Assembly: GCF_902713615.1 (NCBI RefSeq)
Contig: NC_052163.1
Span: 124,533,144 to 124,597,143, forward strand
DNA from: Scyliorhinus canicula
Taxonomy: Eukaryota
Length of the DNA stretch: 64,000 bases
Direction of reading: 5' to 3'
Below are positions 3,508 to 62,985 of this stretch, piece after piece. Positions within the stretch are counted from its first letter, which is position 1. The number at the start of each line of letters is the position of its first letter. The notes under the pieces were generated by a model. It was given only the letters and a program-made list of their open reading frames with translations, ran no database searches and was not told the origin of the DNA. Made by a program: the position numbers and the translations under genes.

Positions 3508-4388
3508 TGGGCATTATTGGCAAGGTCAGCATTTGTTGGCCATCCCTAATTGCCCTGGAACTGAGTGGCGGTTAAAAGTCAGGCACATTGCTGTGGGATT
3601 GCAGTTAAATCAATGTGCATGACCAGTGCTGTCTCTGTTACTGGATGTTTGAGACATTGTCGGGAGAGGTGTTTTACTCTGTGTACTCCTTGCTGTGACC
3701 TGTTGAACGGTGGGCCTGCCTACTGACCCAGCTCTCACCCAAGTTATAGATTTGTGTTATCACGGCAGGGGGAATTCAACCCTTGAATGTCTCACCCCAA
3801 GGTTTGCTTGAGGAATTTTTTTTTTAAAAAGCAGATGGGAACTATGGAGGCTAGTTAAGATGTCAAGGAATAGTCTAAAGGGAGAAAGCTGAGCATTTGA
3901 AAATTGTGCTTTTAACAGCTGCAGAGTGACCTTGTTAGTCAGCTGCTGAACCACCATTTTGATTGCAGTTTCCCCCCCGTTGCTGAAGCAATTCTTCTAA
4001 TTGGAGCTGGCTACAATGATTGTTTCACAATAGTGTAAAAAAAAGGACGGATGCAAGCTATTCGTATGCTATTAATCAAATTTAGAACTTTGAGCACCAA
4101 GATAATCCCTTTTCATCACTGCAGCACAAGATAAATCATGGGATTATGATTGTGGCAATTTTAATCCTTTTCGAAAGGTATTGGAGCACCTTACTGAATC
4201 TCGGTGCTTTGTCACCACCACCACTACCCATTCCTGATTCCCTTCGTGGGAGGTGGGTGGGGGGGGGGGGGGGGGTGCAGGTGCGTCATTGTGTGAAGAG
4301 GTCAGTTAAGGTGAGTGGTGCATGTATCAAAATTTTAGTAGAGATTGGGAGAAGTGTAGTCAGGACGATTTTCTTGAATTGAGTATTC

Positions 4389-10245: not shown

Positions 10246-10438
10246 TCATGTGGAGATGCCGGTGTTGGACTGGGGTGAGCACAGTAAGAAGTCTTACAAC
10301 ACCAGGTTAAAGTCCAACAGGTTTGTTTCAAACACGAGCTTTCGGAGCGCAGCTTCTTCATTCACCTGAGGAAGGAGCAGTGCTCCGAAAGCTCCTGTTT
10401 GAAACAAACCTGTTGGACTTTAACCTGGTGTGATAAGA
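10246..10438. mobile_element. Penelope-type fold-back mini-element with hammerhead motif
   Basis: Inverted arms over 10299-10431; CTGAGGA-A-GGAGC-agt-GCTCC-GAAA-GCTC at 10366-10394. Confidence 0.75.
10362..10398 (+). ncRNA. Minimal type I hammerhead ribozyme motif (stem I weakened)
   Basis: Core CUGAGGA, 5-bp stem II, GAAA, palindromic AGCU stem III region. Stem I TCAC pairs poorly with CTGT; the mirror arm reads GTGT. Confidence 0.6.
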
Positions 10439-27165: not shown

Positions 27166-28107
27166 TTGTACATGTATCTGGGGATGGTTGTACAGTGGTT
27201 ATGGTGCCAGTTGAATTTTAATTGCCTTGATCTTGAAGGACAGGAGCCTGTCAACTCTACCTAATCTGGACTACACGTGACTCCAGTCCTATGCCCTGGT
27301 TGCGCTTTAGCGCCCTGTCAAGTGCCCAATCAAACCATTCTGCCATAAAAGACAATGTTGCCTAAAAGTTCATAAAAGAGGCCCACCAGCTTCTCGGGCT
27401 GCTGAGAAACGACAGCTGCGTTGGCCACATCTCGGAGCATTGTTGAAGAAAAGGGTAACTGGGGCCCAAAAACCCCCCCCCCCCAAGATGTTTCAATCCT
27501 GAAAACCCAAAGTGCTGAGGCTGATGAGAGTTTACTTGATGTAGACGTGCACTCGACGCCTTTTTTATTTGCTGATCTTGTGCATTCTAGTGTTGCTGTG
27601 ATGTGGACTATGGAAATTTGTAATAATTCCTGCAGATCTTCCGGAAAGCTGAAGATAAACAAAGGTGAAGGAAGAAATGTTGATGGGGTATGGCCTGTAG
27701 AGCTGTTAAAGGCCTTTACTTCAGTAAGGCCCATTCAAGTCAAATGACTTTTATATTGACAGATGGAATCGGAGTTTCTCGGAGTATTAAGAATTCTTCT
27801 GCACTTTCTTGGGTGTTCTCGGAGTGCATTTTCTGGTCCCAAAGACTGGATTTTTCTGACGGACGTGATTTGATATGCCAGATTGACTGTAGATCGCATT
27901 CATAATTGCGCCTTTATCAGTGTACCGTTTTGCTCTTGCAGCTTTATAATGCATGATATAGTTCAGATTCCTTGTAGCTAAGGGATATCTCTTCTTCAAC
28001 CACGTCCTGGGTTTCTAGATGTGCATTGATTTACTTTTTAAAATCCATTTTACGGGATGTGGGCATCGCTGGCTAGCAGTTGCCTTTGAGAAGGTGGTGA
28101 TGAGTTG

Positions 28108-28345
28108 AAAGAGAAGATGCTGGAAAATCTCAGTAGGTCTGGCAGCATCTGTAGGGAGAGAAAAGAGCTAACGTTTCGAGTCCGATGACTCTTTGTCAAA
28201 GCTTTGACAAAGAGTCATTGGACTCGAAACATTAGCTCTTTTCTCTCTCTGCAGATGCTGCCAGACCTGCTGAGATTTTCCAGCATTTTCTCTTGCGTTT
28301 CGAATTCCAGCATCCGCAGTAATTTCCTTTTATCCAGTATTATAT
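28108..28345. mobile_element. Penelope-type palindromic mini-element with twin hammerhead motifs
   Basis: 93-bp arms (28109-28201 and 28202-28294), no loop, 6 mismatches; perfect 15-bp TSD ggtggtgatgagttg at 28093-28107 and 28346-28360. Confidence 0.85.
28166..28203 (-). ncRNA. Minimal type I hammerhead ribozyme motif, U3-A8 core variant
   Basis: Minus strand: AGCU UUGACAA A GAGUC aucg GACUC GAAA CG UU AGCU (stem I, core, stem II, GAAA, GUU triplet, stem I'). Confidence 0.6.
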
Positions 28346-28581
28346 GGTGGTGATGAGTTGCCTTCTTGAACCGCTGCAGTCCCTGCGGCGTAGGTACACC
28401 CACTGTGCTGTTGGGGAGGGAGTTCCAGGATTTTGCCCCAGCAACAGTGATAAGTCAGGATATGAGTGACTTGGGAGGGGCTTCTCCAGGTGGTGGGGGT
28501 TCCCAGGTATCTGCTGCTTTTGTCCTTCTGGATGGTAGTGGTTATGGGTTTGGAAGGTGCTGTCGAAGGAGCCTTGGTGAG

Positions 28582-29431
28582 TGTTCTGGGTCCAGATGAG
28601 AATCCCCATTTTGGTAATGATCCCAACGATTTGCATTTGGTAAAGCTGTGAGGATATTTATTGCACCACAGCAGTGATAACACTGACCAGTAGACAGCTT
28701 ATAGTTAAGCACATTAGCAACAAATAAATAGCTTTACAGTTAACAGGCGCAATATTGTAACTTGCTTCCTGAAATCTGCCCCTCCACTCCAATTAAGCAA
28801 GCCATATCTTTGAAATACCACATATGAGGGGCTGGTTTAGCACAGTGGGCTAAACAGCTGGCTCGTAATGCAGAACAAGGCAACAGCACGGGTTCAATTC
28901 CCATACCGGCCTCCCCGAACAGGTGCCGGTATGTGGCTACTGTGGCTTTTCACGGTAACTTCATTGAAGCCTACTTGTGACAATAAGCTGTTATTATTAT
29001 TAACTTTATAACAACCAGGTTTTACTTGCTTATCTTGGTGCAGAGTCCTTGGAGAGAGAAACCCTTTTTTCAGGACCAAGCTGAAAACCTCCTGCTCAAC
29101 TTAGAGCCTTGGAAGCCACTACCCTGTCCAGACAGACTTGGCTCCTCTTATCAGTTTCTCTCACAACACACAACATTCTTTTGTTTCTTGTTACAAGATG
29201 TACCTTGATTTGTTTATCCAGGCTCAAACTGTTAGATTACCTTAGCTCTCTATATCTGCAAACAGGTAAATCTAATAAGGTGTTTACACCTCATCTCCAA
29301 AAATAATTCGAGTACCTCAGTTTTAATCATAGCTCTAACTGACGTACTGTCTGTAAGCATTTTAACCAAGGTTTTAATATTACTGCAAAAATACAAACTA
29401 TTAAGTATAACAATTTCATGTATTCATCACA
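28582..29431. mobile_element. Solo LTR containing a family D SINE
   Basis: TG...CA ends; 4-bp TSD tgag at 28578-28581 and 29432-29435. Confidence 0.8.
28827..29002 (+). mobile_element. SINE family D (second tRNA-like head, T3 tail with (ATT)n)
   Basis: GGGGCTGGTTTAGCACAGTGGGCTAAA...GGTTCAATTCCC followed by TTTTCAC.GTAACTTCATTGAAGCCTACTTGTGACAATAAG. Confidence 0.85.
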
Positions 29432-33129: not shown

Positions 33130-33610
33130 CAGCTGCTCAGGCCCAAGCCTCTTCCAAACCCACGGCCCTCTTACCATCTAGAAGGGCCAGGACAGCACAT
33201 ACCTGGGAACGCCATTACCCGGAGTCTCCTCTCCAAACCACTCATCATCCCGACTTAGAAATGTATCGTCGTCCCTCCACTGTCGCTGGGTGAAAATCCT
33301 GGAACTCCCTCCCCAACAGCACGGGAGGTGTACCTGCACCTCGGGTACTGCAGCGGCTCAAGTGGGCATCTCACCACCACCTTCACAAGGGCAACTAGGG
33401 ATGGGCAATAAATGCTGGCCTACCCAGTGATGCCTACATCCAAAATTAATTGCAAAAGAATTCCTTCTCCGAGGCCTGCCTGCCTCTCCTCCCTAAGACA
33501 CTCCCCTTTGACCACGCTCTACTATCCTCGTGTGCCTCTGCATCGGATTTTGTTTGTAAATAGATGACGGTTTTACTCTGTTAAAATGCACCATATAAAT
33601 ACAAGTTGAA
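33130..33610 (+). mobile_element. CR1-like 3' end followed by an L2-like 3' end relic
   Basis: Shared tail GGGATGGGCAATAAATGCTGGCC, then CTTTGACCA...ATATAAATACAAGTTG. Confidence 0.6.
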
Positions 33611-35360: not shown

Positions 35361-36194
35361 ATTTTTTTAAAAAAAATAATTTTTATTAAGATTTTCACAA
35401 AATATAAACAACAAAACAATATTAACAGAATAACCATTTGTAAAAACCCAAGAGCAACACCCACCCCCTACAAAAACAACTACTAACTCAAAAACAAATA
35501 AAAAAGCAAACAACAGAAAGGAAAGAGATAACACCCGCCACATCCCACGAACCCATGTACACAATTCTCCCCACCCCCGGGTTGCTGCTGCTGCCGGCCT
35601 ATTTTCCTACTGTTCCACCAGGAAGTCCAGGAAAGGCTGCCACCGCCTAAAGAACCCCTGTACTGATCCCCTCAGGGCAAATTTCACCTTCTCCAATTTG
35701 ATGAACCCCACCATATCATTGATCCAGGCCTCCACGCTTGGGGGCTTCGCATCCTTCCACTGAAGAAGAATCCTCCGCCGGGCTACTAGGGACGCAAAGG
35801 CCAGAACACCGGCCTCTTTCACCTCCTGCACTCCCGGCTCCACTGCAACCACAATTGCGAGTCCCCAGCCTGGCTTGACCCTGGATCCCACCACCCTCGA
35901 CACCGTCCTTGCTACCCCCTTCCAATACTCTCCCAGCGCTGGGCATGCCCAAAACATATGGGCATGGTTCGCTGGGCTCCACGAGCACCTAGCACACCTG
36001 TCTTCTCCCCCAAAAAACCTACTCATCCTCGTCCCAGTCATGTGGGCCCTATGCAGCACCTTGAACTGTATGAGGCTAAGCCTCGCACAGGAAGAGGAGG
36101 AATTCACTCTCTCCAGGGCATCCGCCCACGTCCCCTCCTCAATCTCCTCACCCAGCTCCTCTTCCCATTTACCCTTCAGTTCCTCCACCGAGGC
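35361..36194 (-). mobile_element. 5'-truncated L1-clade LINE, same family as 5599-8177, with open ORF2 C-terminus
   Basis: 198-aa ORF 35607-36203 with CARC...HAHMFWACP zinc knuckle; A-rich tail; TSD-like aggg(c/t)ccacctaac at 35347-35360 and 36195-36208. Confidence 0.92.
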
Positions 36195-37278
36195 AGGGTC
36201 CACCTAACTTGCACATCTTTCGGTTGTGGGGGTGAAAGCCACCCAGACGCAGGGAGAGTGTGCAAACGCCGCACAGACCGTGGGATCGAATCTGGGTCCT
36301 CAGCGTCCTAGGCAGCAGTGCTAACCACTGCGCCACCGTGCACGCAGTAATGTCATGGTGGAATTTGGAGTGGGCAGGTCTCTTTAGGGTAAAGTGAAGT
36401 GGTTGTAGGCACACTGAGGAGTGGGACCGGAATTCTGTCTGAAAACAAATCCGTTAAGTTAAGAGAAATATAATTGGGGTTTTGAGTCCTTCGCTTTGAC
36501 TGTATGCAGCATTTGTGAAATCTACCTCCGGAAGGTTGCAAGCATTTAGATGCTGGGAGGCTAGAGACTGAAATCACAGTGGATCTAACTTGGCATTTAG
36601 ACAATGGCTTTGCTTTCAAGCACTGCAGCAAAGATGTGCTGCTTGTTCCTGCAGGCATCCTGGGTGTCGAGCTTGTAATATTAACAATGTCTCACGTGCT
36701 GAGTTATTTGTATGTATGAGCATTCTGCTGTGATTGTTATCCAGTCATTACTGCTGACCTGTTCGTATACCTGTCAGGGAGATCATTACAGCGACTGACC
36801 TCTTTGAGAATTTATTAACGCAAGTGCTGCAGTCGGAAATCTGTGCGTGTGTGTTTTATTAATTAGATTTGAAAAATTAATTGCGCCACATGGGATTGTG
36901 TGTCCTGATAGTTGACCCTTTTCCCCATCACTTTAGTCTACTTTTGTTTTGAGGCATGATAGATGTGACATTATTGGGTTTTACAGCAGAAAAACCAGCT
37001 GAACTACACTGACGTTTACACTCCACTCTCGCCTCCCTGCTCACTATTTGGACACCTTAGCAGAAAGTAACTACAATCCCTTTCTCCAGAAAAAAAGATT
37101 GGCTTGCGATCTCTCGCCCTTTTACCCCTGGTCATAAACGGAGAGAGACCACAGACAGGTCAAAATCCTGGAACTCCCTCCCTAACAGCACTGTGAGTGT
37201 ACCTACACCACATGGCCTGCAGTGGTTCAAGAAGGCAGCTCACCCACCACCTTCTCTAGGGCGATTAGGGATGGGTAA

Positions 37279-62842: not shown

Positions 62843-62985
62843 CAAGAGGCAAAATGCTGCGGTGGGGGAAATCTGAAATATAAACAGGAATTGCTGAGAT
62901 CGTCCAGTAGGTCAGGCAACATCTGTGGGGGGGGGGGGGGGGATAATAAAGAGTTGACGTTTGAGATGGGTGGTCTTTCATCAGG
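62843..62985 (-). mobile_element. Penelope-type fragment with a decayed hammerhead motif
   Basis: Related to the arm of 28108-28345; minus strand CTGATGA-A-AGAC..ATCT-CAAA-CGTC-AACTC. Confidence 0.65.

Follow-up and report, generated by a model that had tools for sequence, protein, structure and literature searches.

Positions 28108-28345 of the window, by which we mean the whole 64-kb stretch of Scyliorhinus canicula DNA analyzed here, hold a genuine 238-bp retrotransposon insertion. The 15-mer GGTGGTGATGAGTTG stands on either side of it, at 28093-28107 and 28346-28360, with 15 of 15 bases identical, and because the bases adjoining both copies differ, the target-site duplication (TSD) is exactly 15 bp long. 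To reconstruct the empty site, the two flanks were fused around one copy of the 15-mer and aligned against the 64-kb window. The fused flanks align unbroken across the junction to 33151-33396 and 37158-37262, both on the minus strand, and the 15-mer is present once in each of these paralogues. Together, the TSD and the two empty-site paralogues therefore establish 28108-28345 as a true insertion of 238 bp, in agreement with the initial annotation of this DNA. The host sequence (27700-28760) belongs in turn to an interspersed repeat, of which the window has at least two further copies (33151-33396 and 37158-37262) at 72-88% identity. Elsewhere in the window, a 198-aa ORF at 35610-36203 on the minus strand matches zf-RVT weakly (E 0.003, short of the Pfam cut-off) and is probably a LINE relic. 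The features of the insertion and its relatives in the window are as follows, where PLE denotes a Penelope-like element.

28093-28107, no strand: left TSD copy, 15 bp, identical to 28346-28360; single in the uninterrupted host-repeat paralogues
28108-28201, minus strand: inverted 5'-truncated copy of a PLE terminal (pLTR-type) sequence, tail-less; 93-nt arm, 94% complementary to 28202-28294
28166-28203, minus strand: minimal type I hammerhead motif, minus copy; descriptor match with U3-A8, bulged A, 5-bp helix II, GAAA, ACGU and triplet GUU
28200-28237, plus strand: minimal type I hammerhead motif, plus copy; core as in the minus copy, with CpG transitions that alter loop 2 (AUUG) and ACGU (ACAU)
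28202-28294, plus strand: direct 5'-truncated copy of the same PLE terminal sequence; 77% identity to the solo relic at 62844-62965 (minus strand)
28295-28345, plus strand: 51-bp 3' extension ("tail") of the plus copy only, missing from the left arm
28346-28360, no strand: right TSD copy, 15 bp, matching the left copy; single in the empty-site paralogues
62844-62965, minus strand: decayed solo relative of the same family; 77% identity to the right arm, no inverted partner
10246-10438: second fold-back, of a different repeat family; arms 10292-10359 and 10371-10438, 68 nt, 91%, 11-nt spacer

Most of the insertion is a loop-less palindrome. Its arms, 28109-28201 and 28202-28294, are 93 nt each and 94% complementary, and they meet with a spacer of 0 nt at a center that falls between the AG and the CT of AGCT; the arm alignment agrees in every particular with the palindrome first described from the letters. 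All of the arm-to-arm mismatches (6/93) are transitions, and two of the six, ATCGG/ATTGG and ACGTT/ACATT, have turned a CpG of the right arm into TpG or CpA. Base 28108 is a single extra unmatched base at the outer end of the left, inverted copy, and this outer end coincides with the arm/tail boundary of the right copy. The two copies of the element are arranged head to head with their 3' ends pointing outward and with a tail at one side only. This tail is family sequence rather than filler, as the relic at 62.9 kb aligns through the 28294/28295 boundary as far as 28331. A self-search of the insert returned the inverted match only, with no direct repeat or tandem unit. In a single-arm RNA, CUGCAGAUGCUG (28249-28260) is predicted to pair with CAGCAUCCGCAG (28308-28319, in the tail) in a stem-loop that encloses the inner 3' end at 28294/28295; this predicted stem-loop (28249-28319) recalls the one where an Anolis PLE begins reverse transcription.

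Each strand carries the motif AGCT-TTGACAA-A-GAGTC-N4-GACTC-GAAA-C(A/G)-TT-AGCT, starting at 28200 on the plus strand and at 28203 on the minus strand. The descriptor matches from these two positions bear out the earlier reading of a minimal type I hammerhead layout with a U3-A8 core on both strands. Within the core (UUGACAA...GAAA), the invariant positions are intact on both strands but for a change of C3 to U and of G8 to A, and positions 3 and 8 still form a Watson-Crick combination. The assignment of these two positions is right, given that the canonical CUGAUGA of the relic aligns with UUGACAA. One unpaired A follows position 9, after which GAGUC and GACUC form a perfect 5-bp helix II, closed by G10.1-C11.1, in both copies. 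The motif also includes a palindromic ACGU and an NUH triplet. The minus copy has ACGU followed by U (GUU), with its predicted cut between 28170 and 28169; the plus copy reads ACAU, a CpG-to-CpA change by which the palindrome is lost, with the triplet AUU and a predicted cut between 28233 and 28234. These sequences are as the initial annotation gave them, and the difference between them is most simply post-insertion decay at a CpG in one arm. Helix I (AGCU/AGCU) pairs in the minimum free energy (MFE) structure of the 38-mer, but the first two bases of its 5' strand are supplied by the inverted copy, so that this helix is only a putative one for the source RNA.

A strict minimal-hammerhead descriptor (Y3, R8, optional bulge, G-C-closed helix II, GAAA) matches three times in the 64-kb window, at the two palindrome motifs and at 10366, compared with a mean of 0.01 matches in 100 dinucleotide shuffles. 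The hammerhead motif is far above chance; the two palindrome motifs count as one observation because both were copied from one source sequence. Relaxing the descriptor (free N3 and N8, one deviation) gave extra matches in the window, all of which lack the ACGU/NUH and helix I context and were set aside as noise on that ground. The Rfam hammerhead models (types I, II and III, HH9 and HH10) gave no match to the locus even at E≤10. We do not read this blank as evidence against a hammerhead, since the same models missed the canonical-core minimal hammerheads used as controls as well (10366 and the metagenomic loci L001, L004 and L006). The cores in the window comprise one U3-A8 source and two C3-G8 examples, the relic from the same family and a motif from another; none is mixed, and the number is too small for a covariation test. 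That the only two departures from the canonical core concern both partners of the 3-8 pair, and are transitions to a pairing combination, is suggestive of selection on this pair, to the extent that a single sequence can speak to it.

The hammerhead secondary structure is the MFE structure of the 38-nt motif RNA (-9.9 kcal/mol), and in a single-arm RNA (28200-28345) helices I and II are kept in both the MFE and the centroid structure. For an RNA of the whole insert, the 93-bp hairpin is predicted at -169.5 kcal/mol and the best structure that retains one hammerhead at -125.0 kcal/mol, a gap of 44.5 kcal/mol. Back-to-back hammerheads are not workable in an RNA that contains both arms, because the 93-bp hairpin excludes the ribozyme fold. 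The central AGCU, previously proposed to serve as stem I for both motifs, is instead a by-product of the junction, with half of it coming from the inverted copy. A cofold of two 38-mers predicts an extended duplex and not a hammerhead dimer, an outcome that is uninformative on catalysis. Judged from these predicted folds, the motif at this locus is a fossil, and a transcript through the insert would form the 93-bp hairpin. Both arms read through the predicted cut sites; therefore, both templates were uncleaved when they were reverse transcribed.

The motif closely resembles hammerheads described from PLEs. The pLTRs of these elements carry minimal type I hammerheads (min-HHRs) with a helix I of 4-5 bp, a conserved extra base located after position 9 and before 10.1, and G10.1-C11.1 (Cervera & De la Pena 2014, PMC4209133). 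Positions 15.2-16.2 are palindromic, helix III is an ACGU that requires dimerization, and in vitro activity is low even for dimers (PMC4209133). The same study describes dual PLE hammerhead motifs on opposite strands, 100-700 bp apart, as well as U3-A8 covariation that replaces C3-G8 (≈1,300 matches in Schistosoma mansoni; a Cercyon PLE) (PMC4209133). The shark motif shares with the PLE min-HHRs the type I form, a putative 4-bp helix I, the unpaired base after position 9, G10.1-C11.1, ACGU and U3-A8 (PMC4209133). It differs from the schistosome families in its host, a shark, and in a helix II of 5 bp in lieu of 7-8 bp (PMC4209133). The background facts cited in the initial annotation, namely the tertiary 3-8 pair, the dimer-acting hammerheads of PLEs and the extra A after A9, are correct (PMC4209133, PMC11167929). 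The U3-A8 core to which it drew attention had been reported for PLE hammerheads in 2014 (PMC4209133).

The architecture of the insertion is likewise familiar. A typical PLE insertion comprises inverted 5'-truncated copies, junction palindromes, TSDs and a 30-40-bp tail on one inverted pLTR (Arkhipova et al. 2013, PMC3846280; Craig et al. 2021, PMC8557442). Similar to these canonical insertions (PMC3846280, PMC8557442), the shark insert has a TSD, an adjacent inverted 5'-truncated copy placed head to head, a palindromic junction, and a PLE-type extension at one end only (51 bp, 28295-28345). The palindromic "mini-element" design seen at first is thus the known head-to-head inverted-pLTR arrangement of PLEs with its optional one-side tail (PMC3846280, PMC8557442). 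Unlike canonical PLE insertions, however, this one has nothing between the inverted copies (no ORF, no full pLTR), and its arms meet without spacer or overlap. The tail is also longer than the 30-40 bp published for PLEs, and the TSD of 15 bp compares with 8-10 bp in rotifer examples. Overall, the data support a Penelope-derived, non-coding insert, and both the insertion architecture and the PLE-type motif fit the Penelope derivation that had been proposed. The suggested search for an autonomous Penelope (RT plus GIY-YIG) sharing the arm yielded none within the 64-kb window, and no PLE RT/GIY-YIG ORF or relic was found there by Pfam searches that covered 20 of its 23 ORFs with a length of 130 aa or more, or by tblastn with the PLE ORFs of L006 and L004. 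The missing RT and GIY-YIG ORF is expected because the copy is 5'-truncated. By blastn, the window holds no second close copy of the element, only the 77% relic. With neither a PLE ORF nor a close second copy in the window, the insert is placed in a particular autonomous family by its architecture and motif.

The relic and the second fold-back offer the nearest comparisons. In the relic, the canonical CUGAUGA stands where the insert has UUGACAA; it lies just 5' of the aligned stretch, at plus-strand positions ≈62967-62973, and the copy extends past 62965. The relic has no inverted partner, and the element family is therefore not obligately palindromic. Within 62844-62985, a run of >15 G (≈62928-62943) takes the place of the CT-rich stretch that follows the cut site of the young copy. 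The fold-back at 10246-10438 has at its apex, from 10366, a minimal hammerhead with a canonical core, CUGAGGA-A-GGAGC-AGU-GCUCC-GAAAGCUC. An extension of ≈42 nt (10250-10291) is present on its left side only, a general architecture like that of the 238-bp insert, and no clear TSD was found for it.

A metagenome scan with the motif, with Y3/R8 allowed, identified CUGAAGA-A-GAGUC-N4-GACUC-GAAAC, together with a 4-bp helix I, on six eukaryotic contigs. All six have C3-G8 cores, so that there is no U3-A8 relative among these loci, which come from other eukaryotes and include no shark DNA. Around the hammerhead, the 147 nt examined show no differences among three JGI contigs (L001-L003), of which L004 and L005 are close variants. 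L006 (MDSQ01024577.1) carries an uninterrupted 814-aa ORF with RVT_1 and GIY-YIG (378-2822; the GIY-YIG match is marginal, with 22.3 bits against a cut-off of 22.6) and a minimal hammerhead at 3658-3684, ≈840 bp downstream on the same strand. The ORF and the same-strand hammerhead of L006 therefore tie this type of motif to Penelope-like elements.

A biochemical framework for the locus comes from Poseidon PAc of Anolis carolinensis, whose purified protein nicks and extends both target strands in vitro (PMC11167929). Reverse transcription of PAc starts at two internal sites, the interval between them being the tail, with the hammerhead a short distance 5' of those sites (PMC11167929). Uncleaved RNA is the main substrate, and hammerhead cleavage requires the protein (PMC11167929). 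Single C3 or G8 mutants abolish cleavage, which the double mutant partly restores (PMC11167929). The PAc cut lies at +26 and its RT start at +111 to +118 of the ORF; here, the distance from the predicted cut to the copy ends is 61 nt (inner) and 112 nt (outer). The PAc core is C3-G8 and its ORF starts inside the hammerhead, whereas the shark motif has no ATG in helix II. The Anolis and Drosophila PLE enzymes are reported to prefer AT-rich targets, unlike the insertion target at 28093-28107, which is not AT-rich.

The observed insertion and its TSD, the way in which the copies are oriented, the tail on one side and its continuity in the relative are probably the product of one PLE retrotransposition event, in which approximately the last 145 nt of the template RNA were captured twice, head to head, by dual-strand priming. 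The captured region would be of the pLTR type and would hold both the minimal hammerhead of the element and its RT start sites. The PLE enzyme would have introduced staggered nicks 15 bp apart, and both 3'-OH ends would have served as primers for copying the element RNA into cDNA, that of the bottom strand from the outer start site to give the tailed copy (28202-28345) and that of the top strand from the inner start site to give the tail-less copy (28108-28201). Both cDNAs would have come to an end at the same 5' point in the RNA, two bases 5' of U3, and joining of their ends there, blunt or via the self-complementary AGCT, would have left a loop-less palindrome within the TSD. Directly past the left TSD, the plus strand is antisense of RNA from the inner site (...CUCUU), and past the right TSD the minus strand is antisense from 51 nt further 3', a geometry that would follow from cDNA synthesis primed, at two start sites, by the two 3'-OH ends of a staggered break of 15 bp. 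The U3-A8 motif would have been inherited from a non-palindromic source RNA able to adopt the hammerhead secondary structure. If active at all, it may be a weak ribozyme that depends on dimerization or on help from a protein, as with other PLE min-HHRs. The six transitions between the 93-nt arms, with two at CpG, would have been gathered after insertion. We infer that priming took place on both strands, which start sites were used and how the cDNAs were joined, with dual-strand priming taken by analogy from one in vitro system. In L1 twin priming, reportedly described by Ostertag and Kazazian in 2001, the 3'-OH of the second target strand likewise primes on the RNA, giving an inverted segment in a TSD-flanked insertion with microhomology at the junction. 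The inverted part in L1 derives from more 5' RNA and forms no palindrome, whereas both primings at the shark locus would fall in the same 3' region.

Where the cDNAs end appears to be a recurrent landmark. In the insert, the two copies share one end point immediately 5' of the hammerhead, and those of the 10246-10438 fold-back stop within ≈11 nt of each other at this landmark. The simplest idea is that the shared cDNA end could be a defined 5' end of the template RNA (the pLTR transcription start); it could also reflect snap-back. A bolder extension, which we offer tentatively and think unlikely to hold as a whole, is that the template RNAs of shark PLEs begin at the 5' edge of the hammerhead and that fold-backs are run-off records of a pLTR RNA of ≈145 nt, with copying from both target strands. 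In that case, the U3-A8 lineage would be a competent protein-assisted ribozyme under selection for the 3-8 pair, and the fold-backs might even constitute an amplifying non-autonomous family.

Dual-strand priming is not the only way to obtain an inverted copy in a PLE insertion. A single cDNA could have primed itself by snapping back, or an antisense template could have been copied, and self-priming is how Arkhipova et al. 2013 interpret the palindromes where inverted pLTRs meet (PMC3846280). The AGCT in which the junction falls is self-complementary, as this account would have it. An intramolecular fold-back on a 4-nt palindrome, however, cannot yield a zero-loop palindrome, and self-priming gives no reason why the inverted copy should stop at the arm/tail boundary beside the TSD, a stop that two RT start sites explain (PMC11167929). 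We regard self-priming as the strongest of the competing explanations and still as an unlikely one. Less probable again is the retrozyme-like Penelope parasite put forward in the initial annotation, a self-propagating non-coding fold-back with the palindrome already in its master copy and one hammerhead per strand to process its RNA. In its favor, the apex of the 10246-10438 fold-back, from another family, likewise lies at the 5' border of a hammerhead core, and the case has been made in a 2026 preprint for animal retrozymes as non-autonomous derivatives of PLEs (10.64898/2026.07.22.740005). Animal non-LTR retrozymes resemble the insert in that they are non-coding, carry a type I hammerhead whose helix III is weak, and are probably PLE-derived (PMC7229834; 10.64898/2026.07.22.740005). 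Retrozymes, however, are direct tandem repeats that yield circular RNAs, whereas the insert is one inverted pair; without a tandem direct repeat, the retrozyme comparison does not carry over. The related relic at 62.9 kb is solo and non-palindromic, and an RNA with both arms, locked in the 93-bp hairpin, would be a poor ribozyme and likely a poor RT template. Moreover, a model in which the inverted copy is made anew at every insertion, from an RNA whose 5' end is defined, predicts the one-sided tail and the recurrent apex equally well (PMC3846280).

Explanations outside the PLEs fare far worse. A long inverted repeat flanked by a direct repeat could be mistaken for a MITE or another DNA-transposon remnant, in which the arms would be TIRs and the likeness to a hammerhead incidental. 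Known cut-and-paste transposon families have TSDs of roughly 2-10 bp, and 15 bp is long for such an element. No sequence lies between the arms, and the 51-bp one-sided extension inside the TSD means that the inverted repeat misses the right terminus. A homologous copy exists solo in one orientation, and the motif is both far above chance and linked to a PLE on L006. With its one-sided tail, long TSD and solo relative, the insert is not what arms of a DNA-transposon TIR family, the outcome that the initial annotation had named as fatal to its reading, would give, and we consider this origin scarcely credible. Almost as implausible is a hairpin RNA gene, that is, a miRNA or endo-siRNA precursor. 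Rfam miRNA-precursor models do align to the insert with low E-values (e.g., MIR6457 with 94.5 bits), but every match falls below its gathering score (94.5 against 140 in that example). These matches come from unrelated plant and animal miRNA families and occur on both strands, as any long perfect hairpin would produce, and the TSD and empty site show a recent transposable element insertion instead.

Dual-strand priming during a single PLE retrotransposition is thus the account we favor, and the locus is a new shark example in which element type, insertion architecture and ribozyme variant are all known already, with no new class of element or ribozyme. As such, it represents a clean, dated fossil of a PLE integration event. 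The outward 3' ends, the two start points and the zero-spacer junction are what the two-strand extension and dual RT starts reported in vitro in 2024 predict (PMC11167929), and loci of such geometry could give in vivo support to the two-strand, dual-start model. The locus also extends the U3-A8 hammerhead variant from the PLEs of flatworms to one cartilaginous fish.
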